A stretch of DNA of 64,000 nucleotides from Dimorphilus gyrociliatus (Eukaryota > Animalia > Annelida): positions 179,540-243,539 of the forward strand of contig CAJFCJ010000007.1 of NCBI GenBank assembly GCA_904063045.1, in the 5' to 3' direction. Below are positions 16,738 through 49,894 of this stretch, piece after piece. Numbering within the stretch: the first letter of the stretch is position 1; the number at the start of each line of letters is the position of its first letter. The position numbers and the translations under genes are program-made. The notes beneath the pieces were generated by a model. The model saw only the letters and a list, made by a program, of their open reading frames with translations, was not told the DNA's origin and ran no database searches.

Positions 16738-17674
16738 ACAAATCTAAAGCTCATTGTAATCTTTACTAGTTTGTCAGAAGAAGGGTAACATACTCTCAGA
16801 ACAATACGTATAATGGATAATACTAAATCTCTCGCATATGATTATTATTTTTTCAAAACTGTCCTAGAATTAGAAAAAGGTTTGTATGATTCATAAAGCA
16901 TTTTCATTTAAAAAAATTATGATATTAGTCAAAAGAATAAAAAATACTTTATTTATTTGAGTATAATAAAGAATAGAATTCAATGGAAAAATAGTTTATA
17001 AAACAATGGAAGAAACGTTAAAATAGTAAATAGTCAAATGCTGTATAATTTATTATTTTGTGTTTATATTTTAGTCATCGCACTGGATGGTCTATAATAA
17101 TAACTCCTATTAAAATATTAAAAAGACTATCTCTACTAACCAAATAAAGTAGTAGAATACATTTTAAAATTGGTTTTAGACAAATGTATTGCTGTTGGCC
17201 AATCTTATTAAGTCTGTTTTACAAATTGAAGAAAAATTGAAATAGTTTATATTACTTGAAAAGTCAATCAGTTTGTTTAGTGTTATGATATAAAGTTAAA
17301 AAATAGGCTTATTATGAATGACTTGACTAGAGAATATATTATTTAAGTTTAACAACATAATTATTAACGAACAAAGTATCACACTAAAAAACAAGAGACA
17401 GTTGTCAGGGTTCAATTGACAGGAAGTGCGGGATCCTTTAATACGATTGAATTTATTAGACTGGAAAGGCTTTGATGACCATAAAATTGGTTTTGCTAGG
17501 AGCAATGAAAGAAATATAATTGGTTAGACATTATCTCAACGCAAGTTATAATCAAAAACAACCATATTATCCTCTCTTTAGACAGAGAATTTATGTAATC
17601 AAATTTTTATCTCTTATACATATTTCTACTTTTCTTTACCAACAGTCAGCACCTTAAATTCATCGTTTGACAGT

Positions 17675-18679
17675 ATGGACTCAAATATCTATAATAAAGT
17701 TATCCCTATCATATCGATTATTGGAATAATTAGTAATCTGGTTAATCTTATTATATTTTCTTATCGCTACACTCATTTAAGAAATCAATTTAAAAGAAAT
17801 CTGACACCAACTACAAAATCTAGATACGCCATAGAAAAGGCAACTGTTTTCTTATTCTGCGCTTGGTCAACTTGCAATTGTCTAACCAGCCTTTTATTAA
17901 TACCGTACATGTTCTGCCATAGAACAATTTTTGTCTTTGAATATAAATCTTTTAATTTCTTTTTTCGTCTCTATGGAGAAGCGTTGCAATACTTATTCAG
18001 TCATCTAGGAATATGGTTAGCAATGGTTACTGTAATATCCCAAATGATTTGCATAAGAGAGATCCAACGAGCTCATGTTTTCGTCAGAACGAGAAATCTT
18101 TGGTTGACATTAAGTCTAATACTTGTTACCGTTACAATTGGTCACATTCCAATGATGTTTAAGTACAGGTACAGATTATACAGAGGGAAGTTGAAATCTG
18201 AAGTTTTATACCTACTAGACATTGGCTGGTTCATGGGGTTGCCTGAGCAAGTTGTTTCTTGGCTTTGGTTAATTTTGGGCTACTTTTTACCATTACTTAT
18301 TTTTGTGTTCTGCATAATAGTTATTCTAAATGAATTAAAATCCGAAAGAATAAGATTCAAAAGTACGAGAAGAGCTGTAAAAAGAGCAGTTTATCTTGTC
18401 TGTATTAACGCATTTCTCTTTCTCATTCTACAAACTCCATCACAAGTTTTTAGATTTATTTTGATCCCTTGGAATCCAGGTGAATTGAAAGAGACTTTTT
18501 CAAAATTACGCTTTATGGCTTCTCTTAGTGATCTATCAGCTATTTTATACTATGGATTTAATTGTTTCATTTGCTGTATTGTTGATAAAAAGCAAAGAAT
18601 AACATTTTATAAGCTAATTTTATTTTGTTTAGGTAAAAATTTGATAGAGAATAAAGACTCCCAAGAGGATACTATATGA
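17675..18679 (+). CDS. Intronless class A 7TM GPCR, FMRFamide/sex-peptide-receptor-like or chemoreceptor-like, with degenerate motifs
   Basis: 334-aa ORF with seven hydrophobic segments. TM1 GIISNLVNLIIF, TM5 GYFLPLLIF, TM6 FLILQTPS, TM7 YGFNCFIC. Confidence 0.8.
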   Translation: MDSNIYNKVIPIISIIGIISNLVNLIIFSYRYTHLRNQFKRNLTPTTKSRYAIEKATVFLFCAWSTCNCLTSLLLIPYMFCHRTIFVFEYKSFNFFFRLYGEALQYLFSHLGIWLAMVTVISQMICIREIQRAHVFVRTRNLWLTLSLILVTVTIGHIPMMFKYRYRLYRGKLKSEVLYLLDIGWFMGLPEQVVSWLWLILGYFLPLLIFVFCIIVILNELKSERIRFKSTRRAVKRAVYLVCINAFLFLILQTPSQVFRFILIPWNPGELKETFSKLRFMASLSDLSAILYYGFNCFICCIVDKKQRITFYKLILFCLGKNLIENKDSQEDTI

Positions 18680-31590: not shown

Positions 31591-34342
31591 TCAATGAGAA
31601 ACATCCTCTTTCTTTTGTAAGATCTTGATTAATTCTGTTTGAAGCTGTTCTGTAAGAAAGGTTTTTGACCAAATATTAATATATTTATAAAATACAGAAA
31701 ATTTAATCTGACGCTTGGCACGTGTCAATTAAAAAGATGCCAGGCGGAAAAAAAGCAGGTCAAACTGTCCATCCCCCAGGCGAAACTTGTATGTTTTATT
31801 ACCGAGCTGTCAATGTATTTATAAAGCGAAGTGTCGGGTCCTTTGAGATTTTACATCATTATTGTAATAATTCCTTTATAAATATAACAGTTACTTTTTA
31901 GTTTTATTCGTTTAAATAAGAATAATAGCGGTTTTTTTTAATTATTTTAAGCTAAAATGTTTGTTTAATAGATGTTTATTTTCGCTATTAATTAGGAAAA
32001 TGGAGGATAAAACAGGACAGGGTTCACCAATTACATATATTTATTCTCATAGGACATTAGCTATTCGAAAAAAAATGATTAAAATTTGTAAATGACAGCT
32101 CACATATTAGCTTTATTATGCCCTTAGAGAACTATGGAACGTGACTGGGCAGCTCACTCACCTCTGGTCATGTTGTATACAGCGTCTAAAGAGGAGTCAC
32201 TTTTGTTCTTTTCCTGCAAAACAATTCATTATATAAGCTGGTTTTTCGAGTAGCCTCGGATAATCCCGATTTAAAATAGAACGAAACTGGAGATCAAAGG
32301 CGGCTCTTCGTTATAAAGGTCATTTAAGGCAGATATTATATGTAAATCGTACTCGAAATTCGTTTGAACTTTATAAAAATATTACAAACAAAGCTCGGCC
32401 GCTCGCCACTCTCTTTCCCTTTTATAATATTTATTATATATAATATTATACTATAAGCGTCAATTATGATATTTTCATTTCAAACAAAAAGAATGTTTTG
32501 GTTGTTGAATTCTAATTACGATTTGAGAAGGTCATATCTCCAATGAGAGGATGACATTTAGAACAGACTGTCTTTGTTTTGAGTACATTTACTTGCTAAT
32601 CACTTCGTGACTCTGTCTGCCAACGACAGATGTTTGTCTTGGCACTGGCAAACATTCATGTTTTCAATACATTCATGTATTTTCATTAGTTGATTGAATA
32701 CACTGGAATCGTAAATACTGCAAAATGCTGCGATGAATTGTCAATGCTCACTCGGCTATGACAAACCTCGATTGCTCGTTTTAATCGAGTTTGATCAAAA
32801 CGTTTATCGCATTAAGTTCTCTTCCGCCCTCAAAATTTACCAATAAAGCTTAAATACATACAATAATATATTCATTCGAATCTTTCCGGAAAACAAATTA
32901 TTGGCAATAAGGAAAAAAGAAACGCCTGAGGGCATGGAGTTGTATATGTTTACACTCTAGATTATATTAACAGGTGGCTGTATACTACATGTCGATTAAT
33001 TTCTTTTTTTTAACAAATTTGATCTAATAGCCGTATAAATATAATTAGAAATTAATTTGCGATTACTATCGATTGATTTATTATTGATTAAGTAAATTAC
33101 CTGTTCAGTTGTCTCCATTTTCGCGTCCAGGGGCGTCGAGGCGTCGACGTCGGTGACGTTTATGTCGTCCGGACTATCAGCTTCCCAGGGCACATCGTCC
33201 CTCGGCGTTGACGGCGTTGAACGCTCGTCCTTACAATTTTGATTGGCCTCTTTCTCTGCGGTTTGCCCCATTTTGCTAAAATCAAATCTCTCCGATTGAC
33301 CGAAGCTGAGATTTCTTGCCCATAAATAGCCTAAGGGGTTAATGTAAGGGGGCGGAGCTTTTTTATTCCAAAATTCCAAAGCGTTCGCCTTATTCTGGAC
33401 GGGGACATCCGGCACTGGAGGTGAGAAAGGAAAGAAAGGAAATGCCGGATGAGGAGATCTCGGGACGTACGGCGGATTGTTGAATGGCAAAACAGGGAGT
33501 CTCGTTGGCAAAGAAGGATTAGGCGTCATCATCTTGGGTCGCTTATAATTCTCCTCTTCCTGTTTAGGAGGCGATTTTGAAGGTGTTATTATCCTCTTTC
33601 GGGAGCCGCCATTGAACATTGCTTTAACATCCTCCCAAGCGTGAACAAGCTCTTCATGGGGTTCGGTATAATCTAGGTGTAAGTGCCTTCTCCAAGAATT
33701 GAAATTAGCTGCATCTGGATGTTGATATTTGGCATTGGGAGTACGATGAAAATGGAAGATAAATTTGTTAGGCGAAAAGAAGAGATCGCAAAAAGAACAA
33801 CGAATACATTTCGCTCTGGAACTATTATAACGTGAGGGTACAAACTGACCCTTACAACCCCAGCCACATTCGTGATAGACGTTAAAGGCAAAATTATCGG
33901 GCAACTTAGGAGGTGATATCTCTTCTAGAAACGACGTTACCAAGCGTTCGGCTTCTCTCTTCGTAATCATACCACAACGGCGAGATGATATTGGCATAGC
34001 TCCAGCCCTCCTTAATATTTCTAATTGTACTGCTCATTTAAAAGAGTCAAATTCAATATTTAATTAATTAAATATTGTATTTAAATTACCTGGCGTGCAT
34101 TGGACACAAGTTATACCAAGGGCAACTCTTCGATTATGAATTTCGTTATATGAATAATTTTTTAACAAGGAATTTGATATCTGAGCCAAGCATAGACGTT
34201 CTTTTCCATCAATAAACAAACTTACAATAGGCACCCCGTGTAGAATAACAGTGCCAACTGTATTTTGTCTCGGATCAAAATCATTAATATCCGATGTTGT
34301 TGGAGGAAAAGAACCAGGTAACAAAGCTGTTGTATTATCCAT
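31591..34342 (-). CDS. SKOR: SKI family transcriptional corepressor (SKOR/Corl/fussel ortholog)
   Basis: Exons 34342-34090, 34029-33101, 32213-32162, 31649-31591. Ski/Sno domain GVPIVSLFIDGKERLCLAQISNSLLKNYSYNEIHNRRVALGITCVQCTPVQLEILRRAGAMPISSRRCGMITKREAERL, SMAD4-binding SAND-like domain YHECGWGCKGQFVPSRYNSSRAKCI...SPNKFIFH, and C-terminal coiled-coil start NMTREQLQ. Confidence 0.95.
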
Positions 34343-38670: not shown

Positions 38671-40093
38671 CTGGCGATTGAAGTCACCATCTGTCCGTAA
38701 CGTCGTCATACATAACATTTTATGCACGAATGACCAAACTATTATTGCAGACTATTGCGGTTGAAAAAGTTCGTACGAGCAAAGGTCGTAGCAGCGAGAA
38801 TATTTCACCGACCTTTCCTAACCTGTACACTTCAAAGGATGTATGCATCGCACCTGGACAGTTGATTACGGAAAGGTTGTTTTTTTTCTTCTACAGTAAC
38901 AATATACTGTATATAAGTTTTAAAATATCAAAACACGTTATTCAAGTACATTTTCATTATTTGTGATAAAATTCTCTCTTTCTTTCCAAATGAGGGAAAA
39001 AAAGAAATAAAAATGAAACAAGCATAAAAAAAGGATTATTCTCATTTTTCTTTTCCTTTTTATGTAAATTTAATTGCTATTCTTATAAAGAGAAAGGGAG
39101 AAAAATTTAATTCAATTTTCTCTTTTCGATAAGCAACATTTTAAAGTCAAGGTCATTAATCAAAAGAGTAACACTGAAATTACAAACTATCTAATGCTTC
39201 TTTGTGTGTCATGCGTTGTGAAAAGATGTAAGTTAATCGCAGTTTTTTCACAATAGAAAATAGTTTCAAGTGTCATCCTTTCAGTAACTCTTTCACTTCA
39301 ACTAATTAATTTTTTTCCATTTCGTAATAATTTCTCGTCTCGTATATTTCCATAGAATTTGCAAATGATGCTTAACAATAATAATTAGTTTATAATGCTA
39401 TTTATTCTTTCTGTCCCCCTCTCTTTCTTTCTATTTGTCTACTTACAACCGTTTTTACTCCATTTATCTTCTAATCCCCCTCGCCACCCCTTCTCTCTCT
39501 GTCTCTCTCTCTGTCTCTCTTTCTCTGTCTCTGTTCTATTTGTATCACTTATTATTAAATTTGATTTAGAATCATAAATTTAACCTTTACTTGATTTAAC
39601 TCTCTAAACAGATCTATATTAACGTTTTACGTATATTTTTCTTTCTTTCTTTTAGTTATTCTTTGCTTTTCTCGCTTCCTTTTCCCGCCATCATCTCTAT
39701 GGTTCGTGTGTGATGTCTAAAACTACAATTAAATATCTTTTATACTCGATAGATGGCACTATTAAGTCTAAGATTTATCGTTACTTATTTTGAAGAGTTT
39801 TAAGTTTTTCGACAGGTGTCGCTTTATTAAGAAGCCGACGTTTTAAGGCATTCGGCCTGAGATTGATTCTGAATCAGCTTCAATACGTGAAAAATACACT
39901 GTTTATTTCGACAATATGATCCAAACAGCGAACACAAACCTATTGGATATTATTGAATTGTAGAATATTTATTAAAGTTTGTTAATTATTCATATTTATG
40001 CATAAAACAAATAATTAATAGGCGGCAAAATCTGTAATTATTTTTAAATTGATTTCCTTTCAGATTTAGTATGCTTATATTAAGAACTTTATC

Positions 40094-41510
40094 ATGATTA
40101 CGAGAAAAGAACGGATATCCAGATTTCGAAGGTATATTATATCGAAAACTTTTAAAAGATCCTTTGAAGTGTGACCCCTCAACTTGAATTACGTAATCCT
40201 TATTAATATTCCTAATGCCTGTATTGAATTTTTTTGTGCATGATACACTATTAAATGTAACCTTAGACCAAAGACGCGTGTATACAGTATGTAACTTTTG
40301 TGAACATATTCAACGGGAATATTTTAATCAGTCATAAAAAAAACCACAGTAGTTCGCTTAATTAAAAAGGGAAAAAAGGGTTACATTCCGAACGTTCTTT
40401 TAATCCAGGGCAAAAATATTCGAGCTGAAGAAAGCGCTTCGTTTTATTAGCGTCGATAGCTTGCGTTTATTTTCCCGCCCTCTTCCTCCTATCATGTATA
40501 AGTGATGCATTGAACTCACCTACGTCAGCATCCTACGCCGTGTTTACGGAAAGATTACGTAGTAAAGTCTGCCATTTATTTATATTTAAGCTGATACGGT
40601 CGGCATATTTCTCAAACGCTCGTATTAAAATTGAAAATAAACATTGAACGACTCTTGAATAGTTAGAATATATTCACAAGTTTCTTACCTTTCGCCCCTT
40701 ATAGTTCAATTTAGCTTAACTTGACACTTTAACCTTAAATCGTATAGAAAAGGATCGTAATGAGAATAAAACTCCCTAACCATTCATAACACAAGTATAA
40801 TTAATAATAGAGTTTTATTTGGATTCTTTTTAACAAGAACGATGTTTTTATGTTGTACAATCAAAGAAAATCCATAATTTAGTTAAACCTCAAACAATTT
40901 AAACGTTCACAAAGAATATAAACTCCCCAGTCTAGTATGAAAAGGTAAGGCTAAGTTACGTTTGAATATAAAATTCACAGCTCCGATATGGTTTTAAAAA
41001 TGCATAAATTATGCAAATATAAAAGTCTCTTAATCGTTTTATTAAATTTTAAAGTAAACAGAAAAATTGGTAAACGCCACATATCGCGTAATTGACATCT
41101 AAAATGAACAGGTGCATCGCCTGCTTTTTCCCTTAGCCTTCTCTCTATCTCTGTCCTTTTCTATTTATCTTTCCTACCCTCTATCCGCCTGTCTTGATAC
41201 TTTTTCCTTCAATATACTGTTCTTTTGTTACAAGGCTACGTATTCCACAACTAAATTATTTATAAACTATGTTTCCAGCTTTATTTCTCCTTCCATGAGA
41301 AGAACTCTTGATCGCCCGCCCTTTTCTTTCTTTATTTCCTTGCCCTATCATTTCCCATTATATAAAACTATGTGAGCATATTTTGTTAATATCTCCTAAC
41401 ATTTCTCCTCATCTATTAAAAATCCCTGAAAGAGATTTATGGTATAGATATATCTTTAATATAGACTATGTAGCTAGCAATATACATATATAAATTTATA
41501 TATATATACA

Positions 41511-41550
<40 letters not shown>

Positions 41551-44500
41551 CCTTTTCTCTTTTGTTTCAGGTGCAACACACTCTTACATGGTATTCTAGA
41601 ATCAAAGTGGACGCAAGTCATTATCATCTTCTTATCGATAGCAAAAGCATTATTAAACGTTTTTCTAATATTAATAGCGTTGGATTATTTAGTAGGTAAG
41701 GAGAAGAGAAATTTTATATTTTTATTACTTTGTTTATGTTTAGAGAATTCTTCGAATGCTTTGCTTTTTTTATCTATTTAAATATTTCACCCATCAAAAA
41801 CCTTGCAAGGGTCTTTAACCGAAATAAAACGTATATTGAACTTATACAATCAACAATAAAAATAATCAACACGCCAGAGAAAAATCACCCCCCTTCCCCC
41901 CTCTCTTTTCCTCTCTTTCCCCCCTGTAGAGTTGCACTTGTGTCAACAATCAATTCATTTATTCGTTTTTCTGGTTTTCAATTATTATCTTTCAACTTTT
42001 AAGCGGGTTTATGAAATTAGTTTATAAGAGGACTTTTTTCAAAGATATTTAAGTATTATATATATTTAAACTTTATGTTTATTTGTATAAATATAATAGA
42101 AATAGGAAATATGCGGGTAGCTTAAAGGCTTATGTAAGTTGGGATGAAATTTCTATATATCACCGTTTATATTGCATAATGTATGCATATGTAAATATGA
42201 AAGACGGCAGGTGCGTCATAAATTACTCTGAGAAAATAAAAAAGAAAGAGGAGGAGAAGAGAGAGAGAGAGAGGGGGGCAGAGAAAAAGTAAGGCGAAAA
42301 GGAAGAAGCAGGTGACAAGGAGGCTAAAAAATTTTTAAACAATTTATCATTTCTCGCTATTCCGCTCGTTTGCGTGATCCCGCTTCCCTGGCTAGCTTAA
42401 AGTTTTTCTTTCCATTCCCCCAATAGTAATAATTATAACCGTATAAGTTTACCTTTTCAGTAGAATGCGTGAGAAAGAATTTCTTTAGAAATACAAATAA
42501 CATAAATTAATAGAATAAACAGATGGAAAGAAGAAGGATATATTGTTGACTATTAACGTCAAACTTGTTAATTTAGTGAACAAAATTGGCAGGTAAAAAA
42601 AGACGAAAAAATTGAAGTAGACAGATAGAGAGACAAATAGACCGAGCAATTCAATACTATTGAAAAGAGCATGTTTTACATTAAGTTATTGTTACCCTAA
42701 GTCGCTTTTTATTTCTTATATTCCCTTTGTAAGATCTATACGCCAAGGTAGTAAAATATACGTAAAAAGGAGTATTTCTTTTTCATGATTTCAGACGGAG
42801 ATTTCAATACGTCTGTAGTTTCATTTTTACTTTATGGTCTTCTCATTTTACACATTTGTTTACTCTTTACACAGATAAGAATGTCGAAAGCGATGATGAG
42901 AAAAAAAATAGTCTAAAAGCCGTTCAGGTGACCCTGTTCTCAATCTGCTTATTCATAATTTCTATATTCATGTTAGAGGTTTGTATTTATCTCTTTAAAC
43001 CAATTGATTAAAGACAATAAAAATAATTATAGTAAAAAAACAAATAATAGATAATAAGTAAAATAACGAGGAAAAAACCTTTAATAAGAGGATTATAAGT
43101 GGTGGGTGGTTGAATGGGTAAAGAATCGAAGAATATGGATTATTTGACCTAATAGCGTCCTTTGTTAATTAGGTGTATAATGTGGTGAGAAGAAATATAT
43201 ATATTTGTATTTTATATATAAATATATAGGTGATTTAGGTTAACATAGAAAACTTAAGTAAAAAAAGAAAATCCAGCGTTGAGTGTGAAAATTAACAAAC
43301 GTTCGTGAAAATTTACGCAGGGGATTCACAGCCTAAAAACCGTCAAGTGTATTTGTTATCTTTTAAACATTCCCTTTTGAGACGATTAACCTTTTAACCA
43401 ATAAGAGAAAAAAATTGAATTCTTACCGCCTTGTTTATCGACCATTTATTACTTTAGCTAAAACTGACCTCATTTTTTTCCTATGAGAAAAGAGCGTCCT
43501 ATTTGGTAAATAGAACTAGGCCGCAAAATAACGACGCCGGTCTCGGTCTTCTCAATATGAGAGAAGAGTAAACAGGCAACCTTATCTCCTCTCTCCGAAT
43601 GCAAACAATCGTAAAAAGTCTCTTTCTCACTTTTGTTTTCCAACTTTTATGTTACTTTCCTTATGTGTATCAAAGTTTCTAGTTATTTTTCTCGTTTCTT
43701 ATCTTACCAAATGGATAATTTATACACACAACAATTTTATTGTCGCTAGTCATCGTTTCTTTATTCTTTATCAACAGATTCTATTAAGGATATTATGCAG
43801 ACAATTGACCATCTTGGACGAAAAATTGGAAGTAGGTTATTAAAAAACAATTTCAACAATAGATAAAACCATTAAATAATTTATGTCGCTATTTTTTAGT
43901 TATTTATCATAGATTTTTATAGGTTAAGAAAGTGAACGGAAGTCTAACTTCTTTTAATAAAGCATTCTAAAATATTTCTATAGGTCTTTGATTGCTTCAC
44001 CGTCCTCGTTACCTTCGTTCTATATGTCTCCTTCTACGGGGCTTTACCCACGTCTAGAGAAAATGCCTACGGCTGTGGATTACTTATATTACTTAGACTA
44101 TGGCGTTTGAATAAATGTAGGCATAGTAAGTACAAAATCAAATCATATATGTACCGACATCTGGCGGATACTTTTGATATTATATATAATGCAAAACAAA
44201 CAATCTACACGTACTATACATATAAATATTTACATTTAATTCTCATTTAGCCTTCCAAAGAAAGTATAAAAAAAGAAATACCTATTTGAAATGCCGATTA
44301 GAGAACGCTGAATTGCGGCTAAAAACTTTAAATGGATTAGTTTTGCAACAAAGAGTAAGTTGCCTTAGATATTTAGTTGCTCTTCCCTATGCCCTATTTT
44401 TATGTTTTAATTAATCTTTTACTGCTTCTTTCTCCCTTTTGAATATTCTTAGCGCGAAATTGAACAACTTAAAAGAATCAAACAACTTACTGGTAAGCTA

Positions 44501-44966
44501 TTATGCGATTAGCGTTTTTTATTGTTTTTTTCTTTTTAATCAATGAACAAATTTATTGAAAAGTTCATTAGCTAAAAGAAATAAACAATAATACTGTACT
44601 ACTTTTTAACTAGATATTCAAAACCTTCAAGTTCAATATTTGGGAAGCGCGCCAAATATAGGATTAGGAGCTGCAATTTCGACAATAGCTCCTTCAAACC
44701 CTAATGAAGCTTTGACGGACGCAGTAACTTCTACTCCAGTAAACAACGAGGAAAGGAGAACGTTAGATAAATCTGTGCTATTAGTCCCAAACCACTTATC
44801 GCCTATTAGACGGTCCAGGGGGACAGTTTCTAGTGGATATACTAATCCCAGTTTTGACGATATACCAGACGAAATGAAAGAAATTCAAAGAGTCTCGGAA
44901 GTACCAGTTCCCTTTGGTAGTACAGCAACAATAGGAGAGATATCAAAGGTAAATAATCCTCAATAA
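40094..44966 (+). CDS. Hv1 (HVCN1)/TMEM266-family voltage-sensor-domain protein, 319 aa, with non-canonical S1
   Basis: 8 GT-AG exons, all phases consistent: 40094-40131, 41571-41695, 42875-42978, 43778-43831, 43984-44125, 44251-44354, 44453-44492, 44614-44966 (960 nt). S1 QVIIIFLSIAKALL, S2 IISIFMLEILLRI, S3 KLEVFDCFTVLVTFVL, S4 GLLILLRLWRLNK, then coiled coil ending REIEQLKRI. Confidence 0.88.
41512..41548. repeat. (TA)n microsatellite just upstream of the Hv-like exon 2 acceptor
   Basis: TA tract preceded by TATACAG. Confidence 0.95.
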
Positions 44967-45401
44967 GCGTTTCCCATTATAATGTTAAATAAACTGGCCA
45001 TTAATTTTGACAGTTGGACATGCCTACAACGGATTTGTAATCCAAAAATACCAAAACCAAAAATTCAAAATCTGATTTAAAGTGCTCCTACTCCACTGCA
45101 AAACTGTTAAATCTTGTTGAACTATATAACAAAACTTAGTCAAAATATTTACGTCATATTGCATAATATATATATACTGTATATCTATATGTCTATACAT
45201 TTAAATGTTCAGCCTATTATCTAAAGAAAACTTTTATAAGTAATCAAAATATACGAAACTTAACAAATTTGATGATTATCTTGTTGATTTATATTCTAAC
45301 TATTGACCTACTGAAAGAGAACAATTGCGAAATATCTTTATTAATCTAGTATTAGATGTAATCTAGATATTTTTTGTCCTATACTAGAATATTTCTGTAC
45401 T

Positions 45402-45463: not shown

Positions 45464-45687
45464 TATATATTATACAGTTATATAATAGTTATTTCATCAT
45501 TTCGATCAATACTAGTTTTCTTTGGAAATTCTTATTATAATTTAATAGGTTTTTCTTATTATTATATTTCACTTCAGATGGCAGCACTCATATTTCAATA
45601 TTAAACTAGGTAATTGATTATTTTTGACAGACTATTAGAATGTTTCATAGTGAATCTATTGCGTAACAATTTATAGTAAAGTTGACG

Positions 45688-47250
45688 ATGGAAGGAAAAA
45701 GAGAATATCCAGAAGGAGGATGGGGTTGGTTTTGTGTTTTAGGTTCTGGAATAGTTCACATTATTTTCGGATTAGTTAATAGAGCATTCGGTGTTTTTTA
45801 TGTTGATTTCCTTGAGAAATTTCAGTCATCAAATAGTGTGATAGGAGCTCTTGGAGCTCTAAATATTGCAATTTTCGGATTATCCTCCCCATTTGTTGGT
45901 AGAATAACCGACAAACTGGGCTACCGGCTAACAACGATAATAGGTGCATTTATAGTATCAGGATCTTTCATCATCACGGGTTATGCTACACATCTAGCAG
46001 TACTGTTTGTATCAGTTGGAGTTTTATTGTCTTTTGGTATGGCATTATGTTTTTCTCCAAGCTATCTTATCATTAATATGTATTTTAATAAAAGAAGAGG
46101 CATTGCTATGGGCTTGTCGACCCTGGGTTCGGGTATAGGTTGTTTAGGGGCACCCCTAATCGAGATTCTTTCTGCTAATTATGGATATTCAAGTTCCTAT
46201 TTAATGTTAGGCGGTATAAGTTTACATTTAATTGTTTCTGGAGCTCTGTATCAAGTACCACCAAAAACCCTTGAAATTACAGATGTCGACATTGCAAAAA
46301 TTGAACTTGAAGATAAAATAGAAGATATCAGCAATTTAAAGAAATCCAATAAGAAAATGACTTTACTAAAATCCTGGAGAAATCTTTGTAGTAATTCATT
46401 ATTTCAGTCCGTCCTGTTCGCCAATTTTACGATTTGCTGTTTATCCGGAGGACTAGCAGCATTTCAAATAGCCTTTGCAATGGATAGAGGACATACAAAA
46501 GAAATATCTTCATACCTTTTTACTGGACTGGCAGCGGGTGATATACTAGGACGGCTTATGAGTGGTTTTATAGTGGACTTGAAATTAGTTAAACGATTTA
46601 GAACACATCTTTTTCAAATACTTTGTGCAATATCAGGAATTTTCACGCTTTCTCTACCTCTTGGTTCGTCTTTCACTTTTTATCTGGTTTTTTCTATACT
46701 GTAAGTTTAAAAATTTTTCCATCTTTTTCCTCATTAAATGAGAATTGATAAGACAGAGAGAGAATGCGCAGGGGAACAATATTTGTTCATCAGCAAGTTT
46801 CCTAAATACTTCATTGATATAATAAACTAGAATATGATGAAAGGGAGTATTTTGGGAAAACCATCTCTCTATTTACTTACTAATTAAATAAATTACTAAT
46901 TAATAGACACGATATCAACTAAAATGTTTTACTCGTTTTAGAAGGGGATTATCTATGGCTACATTGCTTGCCCAAAAATCCATAATGGTATCGGACGTTG
47001 TTGGAGATGATTACACAATGGATGGTTTAGGACTTTTGTTATTCGCTAACAGTTCTGGAATAGTCATCACCAGAATAGCTGGAGGTAAGAATATACTGTC
47101 GAACATTTACAGCTTTACATTTATTCGTGTAACATTTCAGGTTTACTAAGAGATACAACTGGCTCACACGATGTGTCTTTTTACCTGTTTGGAGCACTTG
47201 CTGTACTAAGTATTATTGTTTATGGTTGTAAAATAAAACTTGGAAAGTAA
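45688..47250 (+). CDS. SLC16: Monocarboxylate transporter (SLC16/MCT, MFS)
   Basis: Exons 45688-46700, 46942-47084, 47141-47250. N-terminal PEGGWGW motif, YFNKRRGIAMG loop, GDILGR and about 12 TM segments. Confidence 0.92.
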
Positions 47251-47831: not shown

Positions 47832-49894
47832 TCAAGCATCTGTAGTTGGCTTTTCGAGAGAGTACGGTGGGGGAGGACCATCATCGTCGTATGTTGGTAA
47901 CCTAAGCACGTTTGGCGATTGATAAGCTTCAACGTTAGGCGAAAGGGGAGTGGTGCTAAATTGCCTGCTGGGTAGAGGAGGTGGGAGGCTAGAGCTTGGT
48001 AAAACTGCATAGACATTTGGATCGTCAATTTGAGATTGAAGGCTTCTCAATTTGCATTCTGCGACTTCCGCGTAAGGATTTTCACCCATAGCTTCTAAAG
48101 CTTTGGGCGCATCTGAATAAAAATTTGTGCTGCAAGCTCCTCCCCCTCCTATACCATTAGGACCAGCCGAACATGCTCCATCCGCATCAAAAACTGGATT
48201 ACAAGCGTTAATCACATCTACATCAAAGTGTTCTCGATTTAAATTAGCCTGATTTTGAACTTGTTCTTGTGGTAACTTTCTTCTGATGAGCATAGATCAA
48301 TAAACTTTGAGTTTTTTAATAAAATTAATTATTCAACTTACGCTTGTCGACGTCTGTAAACTATCAGGCTGATAGCAACACACAAAATAGTTAGAACCAT
48401 TATTACTATGAGGAGAATATACCAGTGCTTAGAAATAACAGATGATTCATTTTTGTAAAGTTTCTAAATGATAGAACAGTGTCTGCAATTAGTATTGTAC
48501 ATTGAATATTGATAAACGAACGTACTTCTTTTTGATTTGGAGCAAAAGAGTTTGCACTATTTGGTGATGTTGAAATCGGTATGTTACAATAAGTACCACC
48601 AAATCCAAAAATACAAATACAGCTCCCTTCTTTACATACTCCATGTACGCAGGGAACGTATGGATGACCCAATTCATTTTTATCCTTACAGGCATCCTTT
48701 TCGCATAGTTCACCAAAATATGCCTTACTACAAATACACATACCATTTGTCCGATTACAAACAGCACCATTCAAGCAGGATTTAGCATCACAAACATGAG
48801 TTTGACACTTATCACCGGTGTAGACACGCGGACAGGAACATTTCAAGTTTTCAACGCAAGTACCATTGTTTAAGCAAGGATTTTGCAAATCACATACATG
48901 ACTTTCGCAAGTTTTACCAACAAATTGGTCGGTACAAGCGCATTCAAACATTGCCTTTTGTGGTTCATAACAAGTTCCTCCATTTAAACATGGATTCGAG
49001 TCACATTCTTTTATATCTTGTTCACAATTTTCACCTATCCAGCCAGCATGACACAATTTCTTACCCGTTTTCGAATCACAGTCAAAATTGCTGTTTCGTT
49101 CTCTTTTACAAAAGACAGAGCAGTCAGTATGATAATAGTTTGTTCGACACTTTACCCAAAATTCTAATTCGATAGTGTTTCTTGTATTATAATAATACTT
49201 CCCCCGGAATGATGATTTTCTCTTTTCTCCATTTGCAGCAGTCTTTAAATCGAAGTGAAATCTATCAACCAAATCATCATTATTGTAGCTATCGTGATCG
49301 TGAACATCTATGTCTACAACTACTCCACCCTGTATTGTCATTATTAATCCCATTAGAACAGATATAAAGCTGCAGTAAATAGAATATAAAACCTGATATT
49401 TATCTCTAACTTGTATCTTATAAGGCTGAAGACCACTGAATCTTGTAACTTTATAGCGATTATTCTGTTCGGACGTTGTTTTGCGCCCTAGAGAGCATGT
49501 TTTCTTACTAATAGTAAGGAAAATAGTTAAAATCTCAACAAATAAATGTATATAGATATATATACTTTTCAGATAATTTGGAGAAGCAAACTTGAAAGAT
49601 GGGATCACACTTTTTCTTACTACCAGTAATAAAAGCTCCACCATCGCACACATCTCCGTCATGTTCCCTAGAATTTCCTTGCCATTGAATTAAATTGACA
49701 TAAAAATCAGCTACAATTTTCGCCTGAGCTATCCATAACTATATATTTAAACAGAGAGAACTTTAAATACGATATGATGTGTATATAACATGAAACTATA
49801 TACTGTATATATACTGTATATACTAATATATATATTTGTTTATATTTACAATAAAAATGGAGTAAAAAATGAAGTAGAAATTAAGAATTCGCAT
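47832..49894 (-). CDS. Delta-like Notch-ligand-type protein (signal, C2/MNNL, DSL, 4 EGF, TM, intracellular tail)
   Basis: Exons 49894-49850, 49738-49566, 49507-49393, 49329-48526, 48463-48342, 48282-47832, all phase-consistent. MNNL CDPIFQVCF, DSL CRTNYYHTDCSVFC...CHAGWIGENC, four EGF repeats and TM WYILLIVIMVLTILCVAISLIVYRRR. Confidence 0.85.

Follow-up and report, generated by a model that had tools for sequence, protein, structure and literature searches.

The stretch of DNA considered here, referred to below as the window, comprises 64,000 nucleotides of the annelid Dimorphilus gyrociliatus (GenBank assembly GCA_904063045.1, contig CAJFCJ010000007.1, positions 179,540 to 243,539 of the forward strand). 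Its plus strand carries, with coding sequence from 40094 to 45040, a gene of nine coding exons that is intact and expressed. Its product, 322 amino acids long, belongs to the lineage of the Hv (voltage-gated proton) channels and joins a voltage-sensing domain of four helices, S1 to S4, to a presumed coiled coil and a long tail. In the best-scoring alignment with human Hv1 (hHv1), its S1 helix carries a lysine, Lys38, in place of Asp112, the residue of the selectivity filter. Asp112 is the best-studied residue of Hv1, and we know of no functionally tested natural Hv channel that has anything other than Asp or Glu at this position.

The gene can be followed exon by exon along the plus strand. 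The 3' part of a 5' untranslated region (5'UTR) exon occupies 39900-39976, and RNA contigs extend about 47 nt upstream of 39900. The first coding exon (40064-40131) encodes Met1 to Arg12 and part of residue 13; an in-frame TAG upstream, at 40067-40069, establishes the ATG at 40094 as the start. The second coding exon (41571-41695) encodes residues 13-54, that is, the pre-S1 segment and helix S1, including the AAA codon of Lys38 (41644-41646) and the AAC codon of Asn42 (41656-41658). An acidic S1-S2 loop and most of S2 follow in 42875-42978, with Phe86 (42967-42969) and Glu89 (42976-42978) near the exon end, and the end of S2 with the S2-S3 linker, including Arg93 and Glu107, lies in 43778-43831. 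The exon at 43984-44125 encodes S3, the S3-S4 loop and S4, and holds Asp110, Tyr121, Arg145, Trp147, Arg148, Lys151 and His154. A basic post-S4 stretch is encoded by 44251-44354, together with the beginning of a presumed coiled coil recognised by heptad counts, further heptads (REIEQLKRIKQLT) by 44453-44492, and the end of the heptads together with a tail of about 100 amino acids rich in Ser, Pro and Thr by 44614-44948. The last exon (45014-45100) encodes LDMPTTDL, the stop codon at 45038-45040 and a 3'UTR reaching to at least 45100.

This structure was checked over positions 39900-45100 against the contigs assembled in four public runs, X1 (2017) and X3-X5 (2020), which come from two studies. 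The run type is labelled '?' or 'DNA?', and the runs were taken as RNA from the behaviour of their contigs, which skip introns. Each run contains one contig, about 0.9-1.2 kb long and with a depth of 60-340, from which all introns are missing between GT..AG borders; contigs containing intron sequence are short and of low depth (8-53). This evidence is resolved at the level of contigs, and low-level RNA editing or minor isoforms fall outside its resolution. In intron 3, the longest internal intron, contigs of depth 8-16 occur in three runs (window 42978-43561); these resemble unspliced precursor rather than an extra exon, because one of them starts at the last exon base.

A preliminary description, made from the letters of the sequence, had proposed eight exons joined in frame into 319 amino acids: 40094-40131 at the 5' end, the six exons from 41571-41695 to 44453-44492 as given above, and 44614-44966 at the 3' end. 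The GT..AG borders and the reading frame of this model were reproduced, and six of its seven junctions (41695/42875, 42978/43778, 43831/43984, 44125/44251, 44354/44453 and 44492/44614) are listed in all four runs. The remaining joint, 40131/41571, has no row of its own and follows from contig geometry, with 66 letters between 39976 and 41569 in record 11. It is unlisted because rows near a TA repeat were dropped; a long (TA)n run at 41479-41560, in intron 1, was skipped as a repeat during read mapping. Moreover, no run shows a single letter that differs from the genome between 39900 and 45100. The lysine codon is therefore real in two studies, and the GAT or GAC that would have restored aspartate is absent.

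The preliminary junctions and start proved right, and the revision concerns the two ends. At the 5' end, a 5'UTR exon was added, since position 39976 is joined to 40064 through GT..AG borders in all four runs. At the 3' end, an additional 65-nt GT..AG intron (44949-45013) is removed in all four runs, joining 44948 to 45014 (recorded as 44946 to 45012, with the cut moved by +2). This intron moves the C-terminus to ...GEISK-LDMPTTDL, that is, ...EISKLDMPTTDL (also written ...GEISKLDMPTTDL), and yields 322 rather than 319 amino acids. The earlier ending, ...VNNPQ with its stop at 44964-44966, would be an intron-retained form. The final three residues, T-D-L, resemble a class I PDZ ligand; the likeness spans three residues only, and the intron-retained form would lack them.

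The architecture of the protein is that of a stand-alone voltage sensor. Hydropathy reveals three strongly hydrophobic segments, S1 (28-50), S2 (73-95) and S3 (108-124), along with a charged S4 (139-154), and there is no candidate for S5-S6. A short N-terminus of 27 amino acids precedes the voltage-sensing domain, heptads set in immediately behind S4, and the remaining 110 or so amino acids form a tail ending in T-D-L. S4 reads GLLILLRLWRLNK, and its first ten residues, GLLILLRLWR, are the same as in human Hv1 (PDB chain 5oqk). The RxWRxxR/K motif of S4 with its conserved Trp is present as R145-L-W147-R148-L-N-K151. After S4, a very basic stretch leads into about six heptads in one register with mostly Leu, Ile or Val at positions a and d, spanning approximately residues 167-210.

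Residues were mapped to human Hv1 on the basis of the human segments in HMMER alignments. In S2 and the linker that follows, F76 corresponds to H140, F86 to F150, E89 to E153, R93 to K157 and E107 to E171. In S3 and S4, D110 corresponds to D174, Y121 to D185, R145 to R205, W147 to W207, R148 to R208, K151 to R211 and H154 to N214. The spacing between F86 and E89 (3) and between E89 and D110 (21) is the same as between F150, E153 and D174 of hHv1. Judged by these residues, the gating-charge machinery is intact, comprising R145, R148, K151 and Trp147 in S4, the Phe86 cap, and the inner acids E89, E107 and D110. The hydrophobic gasket of Hv1 consists of V109, F150, V177 and V178 (PMC6754559); its equivalents here are Ser35, Phe86, Thr113 and Val114. 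Four helices, the lack of a pore domain, the S4 signature, the conserved spacing and the post-S4 heptads agree with the earlier assignment of the protein as an Hv-type voltage-sensing domain with a coiled coil.

Database searches gave signals of different strength. The S3-S4 exon (47 amino acids) matches a single solved sequence in PDB, human Hv1 (5oqk), and this match is weak (E=0.47). A profile of this exon combined with a related metagenome contig, L001, described below, was compared with 177,635 solved sequences and matched only Hv1 (3wkv, 1.7e-7; 5oqk, 8e-6) and Ci-VSP (1.5e-5 and 4.8e-4). The S1 exon alone and the S2 exon gave nothing meaningful against PDB sequences, and separate exon pieces gave no match in Pfam, including VGPC1_C and the tail.

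The identity of the residue at the filter depends on the register of S1. Every ungapped register was scored against the S1 of human Hv1 (a 29-residue stretch of 5oqk) and of Lingula Hv1, alongside 2000 composition-preserving shuffles. The register that sets K38 opposite D112 scores best: for human Hv1 it reaches 29, with the runner-up at 10, and for Lingula Hv1 it reaches 24, with the runner-up at 8. The observed score is matched by 10-26 of the 2000 shuffles (0.5-1.3%), and the register is moderately supported, not beyond doubt. It yields S35=V109, K38=D112, N42=V116, L45=E119 and A49=D123. Together with the human segments used for mapping, it agrees with the preliminary description, which had placed Lys at D112, Asn at V116, Leu at E119, Ala at D123, Tyr at D185 and Phe at H140.

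A view of S1 that requires no alignment leads to the same residues. After Gln28, the sole polar residues from Val29 to Leu50 are Ser35, Lys38 and Asn42, and they lie on one helical face. Asp and Glu are missing from residues 28-50 of S1 and from S4, so that the acidic filter residue in mid-S1 that characterises the Hv family is absent. The remaining outer acidic positions, E119, D123 and D185, are occupied by Leu45, Ala49 and Tyr121. In effect, the outer half of the helices holds no acidic side chain; the nearest, Asp51 and Asp55, stand at the outer end of S1, beyond the D123 position. The long introns 1 and 2 were searched for an alternative S1 exon with Asp by a tblastn comparison of every exon peptide with the window, and none turned up. 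The second-best match of the S1 peptide, at 17676-17762, was rejected as an alternative S1, as it falls inside a G protein-coupled receptor (GPCR)-like gene. That gene, an uninterrupted frame at 17400-18600 on the plus strand (...NLVNLIIFSYRY...), looks like a GPCR of rhodopsin type and gave the best off-target match of the peptide.

The consequences of changing the filter residue have been described in detail for human Hv1. The D112K mutant and the D112V/V116N double mutant conduct and are permeable to Cl- (PMC4969798, table 3), while D112V and D112I do not conduct (PMC4969798). Aspartate works only at position 112 or 116; engineered at 109 or 116 it gives currents, and most other S1 positions give none (PMC4969798). 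Every non-acidic substitution at 112 that produced current lost proton selectivity, whereas the charge swap D112R/R211D remains proton-selective (PMC4969798). Mutant currents are small and depend on the expression system, and D112K alone shifts activation by about +46 mV (PMC4969798). In the accepted mechanism Asp has to pair with Arg or Lys, and without Asp the uncompensated positive charge of Arg favours anions (PMC4429351). A pore-facing carboxylate is required for proton selectivity, and a non-acidic residue at 112 abolishes it (PMC4969798; PMC4429351). At the gasket, single V109T and V177T changes cause no leak (PMC6754559).

As natural variants at the filter, a survey of Hv sequences published in 2023 reports Glu in stick insects, Limulus and Balamuthia, and Gln61 in a Trp-less sequence of the hemichordate Saccoglossus; Lys is unmentioned (PMC10377628). 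A literature search found no published description of a natural Lys at the 112 site. Two apparent precedents were set aside. An Eisenia Hv with Ser at D112, D123 and D185, as given in the machine-read supplement of the survey, was rejected, given that highlighted residues of human Hv1 and Notospermus are also corrupted in that file (PMC10377628). This supplement also misprints the S4 of both, and its letters at functional sites are unreliable. The other, from a paper on ArHv2 of a bdelloid rotifer, was rejected as well; its Lys sits in S4, not in S1.

The nearest counterparts of the protein include Hv1 (HVCN1, VSOP), with the Hv1-Hv4 types of lophotrochozoans. The likeness comprises the S1-S4-only layout, the F150/E153/E171/D174 spacing, the post-S4 heptads and GLLILLRLWR. 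The S4 motif RxWRxxK with the Hv-specific Trp is a further shared feature, and a Lys at the third position is reported for molluscan Hv4 and fungal Hv as well (PMC10377628). Unlike Hv1, the protein has Lys rather than Asp or Glu at the filter, neutral residues at the E119, D123 and D185 positions, neither of the two His of the Zn site, and a tail of about 110 amino acids past the coiled coil, where Hv1 ends. Ci-VSP-type domains are likewise S1-S4 sensors that stand alone and whose S1 is free of an acidic filter residue, and Ci-VSP scores close behind Hv1. Voltage-sensing phosphatases (VSPs), in contrast, have no Trp in S4, and a phosphatase takes the place of the coiled coil (PMC10377628). With Trp147 present and a tail for which Pfam gives no match, and so no phosphatase domain, a VSP identity was rejected.

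A further comparison is with TMEM266 (HVRP1, C15orf27). In this protein, which senses voltage without proton current, the 112 and 185 positions hold Val111 and Met185, and a coiled coil is followed by a tail of some 250 amino acids (PMC6392501). The window protein likewise has no acidic residue at either position (Lys38 and Tyr121 versus Val111 and Met185), and it shares a presumed dimerising coiled coil and, beyond it, a long disordered tail. The differences are equally clear: the 112/185 pair is hydrophobic in TMEM266 and charged or polar here; TMEM266 retains E118, D122 and H139, the latter as part of a Zn2+ site, where the window protein has Leu45, Ala49 and Phe76; and its N-terminus measures about 100 amino acids, as opposed to 27. 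TMEM266 is reported to be restricted to vertebrates (Papp et al., PMC6392501). The resemblance is more likely convergent. The mutant background cited in the preliminary description, namely that D112K and D112V/V116N are anion-permeable and that TMEM266 has Val and no proton current, matches the published accounts (PMC4969798; PMC6392501).

A search of 1.84 billion protein representatives with the S3-S4 exon as query returned three matches. P0002 is the sole real relative, with 60% identity over 44 amino acids; P0001 and P0003 are HYR-repeat and DUF6956 proteins and were dismissed as chance matches. The source of P0002 is L001, a metagenome contig of 988 bp that represents genomic DNA. Its G+C content is 45%, versus 31% here, which indicates a more G+C-rich organism. 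L001 contains introns at 153-209 and 519-580, the first being a 57-nt GC-AG intron that is open in frame and was read through by the gene caller. Once spliced, L001 aligns with residues 56-200 of the window protein, with 57 identities in 152 columns, and its exon covering the second part of S2 to S4 reaches 26.5 bits for Ion_trans of Pfam, above the cut-off of 25. HMMER had paired residues 34-61 of the L001 open reading frame (ORF) with the S1 of Hv1, but this stretch is S2 plus the in-frame GC-AG intron. The pairing was rejected because splicing restores both the 18-residue ..LE-to-VFDC spacing of the window protein and its exon border. The S1 region lies off the contig.

L001 retains the equivalents of F150, E153 and D174 as well as RLWRxxR. 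More specifically, it shares with the window protein the Tyr at the D185 position (TFVLYLSF and TFVLYVSF) and two intron positions, one in S2 (...LE|I...) and one in the coiled coil (...QR|REIE...), which correspond to the end of exon 42875-42978 and to the intron preceding exon 44453-44492. L001 has no counterpart of the window intron that separates the S2-S3 linker from S3. The common Tyr and intron positions therefore indicate that an Hv type with Tyr at the D185 position is older than Dimorphilus gyrociliatus. Protein searches that used P0002, an alignment (A2) or the S1 exon as query either recovered P0002 alone or yielded no candidate with three words in common, and two metagenome scans, with A2 and with an S1 alignment, yielded pattern matches and no relative. 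The earlier proposal of a distinct Hv subfamily thus gains the derived Tyr and the two intron positions, and it is still weakly supported, with this one relative found.

These results bear on what the protein does. Classical proton selectivity is very unlikely to remain, because it requires a pore-facing carboxylate and the outer half of the helices offers none. The reading favoured here, plausible although somewhat short of probable, is a voltage sensor or modulator of the TMEM266 kind, dimeric through its coiled coil, with a tail that signals or anchors, and with no proton current. A crevice lacking the Asp-Arg pair would fail to select protons, and S4 would still move with voltage, probably at more positive potentials. 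Such a positive shift of activation would be expected from the loss of four outer countercharges and the addition of a fixed positive charge, and it might be offset by the acidic S1-S2 loop and by Asp51 and Asp55. The predicted coiled coil would allow the protein to dimerise, and its role would lie in signalling or anchoring through the tail. If any ion passed at all, Lys38 and Arg148 would favour anions.

Several lines of evidence speak for this sensor reading. Among them are the Hv1-identical GLLILLRLWR, the matches of the L001 profile, the Hv1-like spacings, the S1 register, the lack of an alternative Asp-bearing S1 exon in the introns, the need for a pore-facing carboxylate in proton selection, and the Tyr and intron positions shared with L001. 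In addition, four RNA data sets bear out the gene model, the AAA codon and the expression of the gene; the four hydrophobic segments leave no room for S5-S6; S35, K38 and N42 share a helical face that matches V109, D112 and V116; and TMEM266 provides the precedent of an Hv1 relative that senses voltage without proton current. Other observations weigh on the opposite side. The S1 face is more polar (Ser, Lys, Asn), with Thr113 at the gasket, than the more hydrophobic core of TMEM266 (V111, M185), and such residues are easier to reconcile with a crevice that is wet and possibly conducts than with a sealed crevice. Furthermore, hHv1 D112K itself conducts (PMC4969798). The S1 register comes from one short ungapped alignment that a small share of shuffles equals, the S1 exon alone finds nothing in PDB, and separate exon pieces find nothing in Pfam. 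The coiled coil is drawn from heptad counts and the PDZ-type ending from three residues, Lys38 is known from this one sequence, and function is read from the sequence. The preliminary description had regarded the gene as a candidate natural anion-conducting or non-conducting voltage sensor. Its core stands, namely an intact, expressed voltage-sensing domain of the Hv family with a coiled coil, Lys at the filter and Asn one turn above; what did not stand is the 319-amino-acid model, which needed a new C-terminus.

The same polar face leads to the strongest alternative, a natural voltage-gated anion pathway through the voltage sensor, which we consider possible but unlikely. With S4 in its outward position, Lys38 and Arg148 would create a positively charged narrow point, with Ser35, Asn42 and Thr113 along its walls, through which small anions such as Cl- could pass. 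The Cl- permeability of D112K and D112V/V116N (PMC4969798, table 3) and the attraction of anions by an uncompensated Arg at the filter (PMC4429351) agree with such a pathway. So do the polar pore face of S1, the Thr113 at the V177 position of the gasket, the retained Hv-specific Trp147, the full charge-transfer centre and the expression of the gene. At both S1 positions, the residues engineered into the mutants are those of the window protein. They keep, however, E119, D123, D185, R211 and the wild-type gasket, all of which are changed here, and the behaviour of the natural protein is therefore not readable from them. Additionally, the mutant currents are small and vary with the expression system (PMC4969798), and V109T and V177T, as single changes, produced no leak (PMC6754559). 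No natural precedent is known, and no orthologue shows conservation of K38 and N42. The still stronger claim, that this would be the first natural channel to use its voltage-sensor domain as a voltage-gated anion pathway, with Asp replaced by Lys38 and Asn42 one turn above, and that it would form an undescribed Hv subfamily with its L001-type relative, is slightly more doubtful than the pathway itself.

That the protein is still a proton channel seems improbable. Transfer would have to proceed through a deprotonatable Lys38 or through Asp51 and Asp55, or else the true S1 register would have to put another residue at the constriction. The moderate support for the register leaves some space for this view, all other Hv hallmarks are kept, and in hHv1 Asp functions from 116 as well as from 112, with D112R/R211D remaining proton-selective (PMC4969798). 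Nevertheless, residues 28-50 of S1 and the whole of S4 contain neither Asp nor Glu, which leaves the protein no shifted filter and no charge swap. Moreover, Asp51 and Asp55 lie beyond the D123 position, and each non-acidic substitution at 112 that gave current lost selectivity for protons (PMC4969798).

Least probable of all is a decaying or lineage-private copy, transcribed without selected function and heading to loss: the strong divergence of the protein, a single relative among 1.84 billion representatives, the joint loss of four acidic positions and the lack of an orthologue with Lys in the homologue and metagenome searches would suit it, but nine coding exons with canonical splice sites preserve an unbroken frame, the depth of spliced contigs greatly exceeds that of intron contigs in four runs, F86, E89, E107, D110, R145, W147, R148 and K151 are precisely retained, and a relative in another organism (45% versus 31% G+C) keeps the derived Tyr and the intron positions.

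The anion permeability of Hv1 mutants that are non-acidic at this site has passed for a laboratory curiosity. A natural protein that is intact and expressed, with Lys at the filter and the remaining gating apparatus retained, offers a direct test of whether the Hv scaffold is used beyond protons, either for anion flux or for pure sensing as in TMEM266. It also supplies a natural background for asking which of the accompanying changes (E119L, D123A, D185Y, V109S, V177T) accommodate a lysine in the crevice.

Several minor features surround the gene. Upstream of the main start codon, an eight-codon ORF read from the sequence (40071-40097, plus strand) may act as a translational control element; its TGA stop and the main ATG share letters (ATGA). 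The genome of this animal is very small. Among the neighbouring ORFs, the one at 32996-34342 on the minus strand looks like a SKI/DACH-type protein. The ORF at 45682-46704 on the plus strand has the appearance of an MFS (SLC16-like) transporter and begins 640 bp past the stop codon of the Hv-like gene, and the one at 47832-49662 on the minus strand resembles a Delta-like DSL/EGF ligand.

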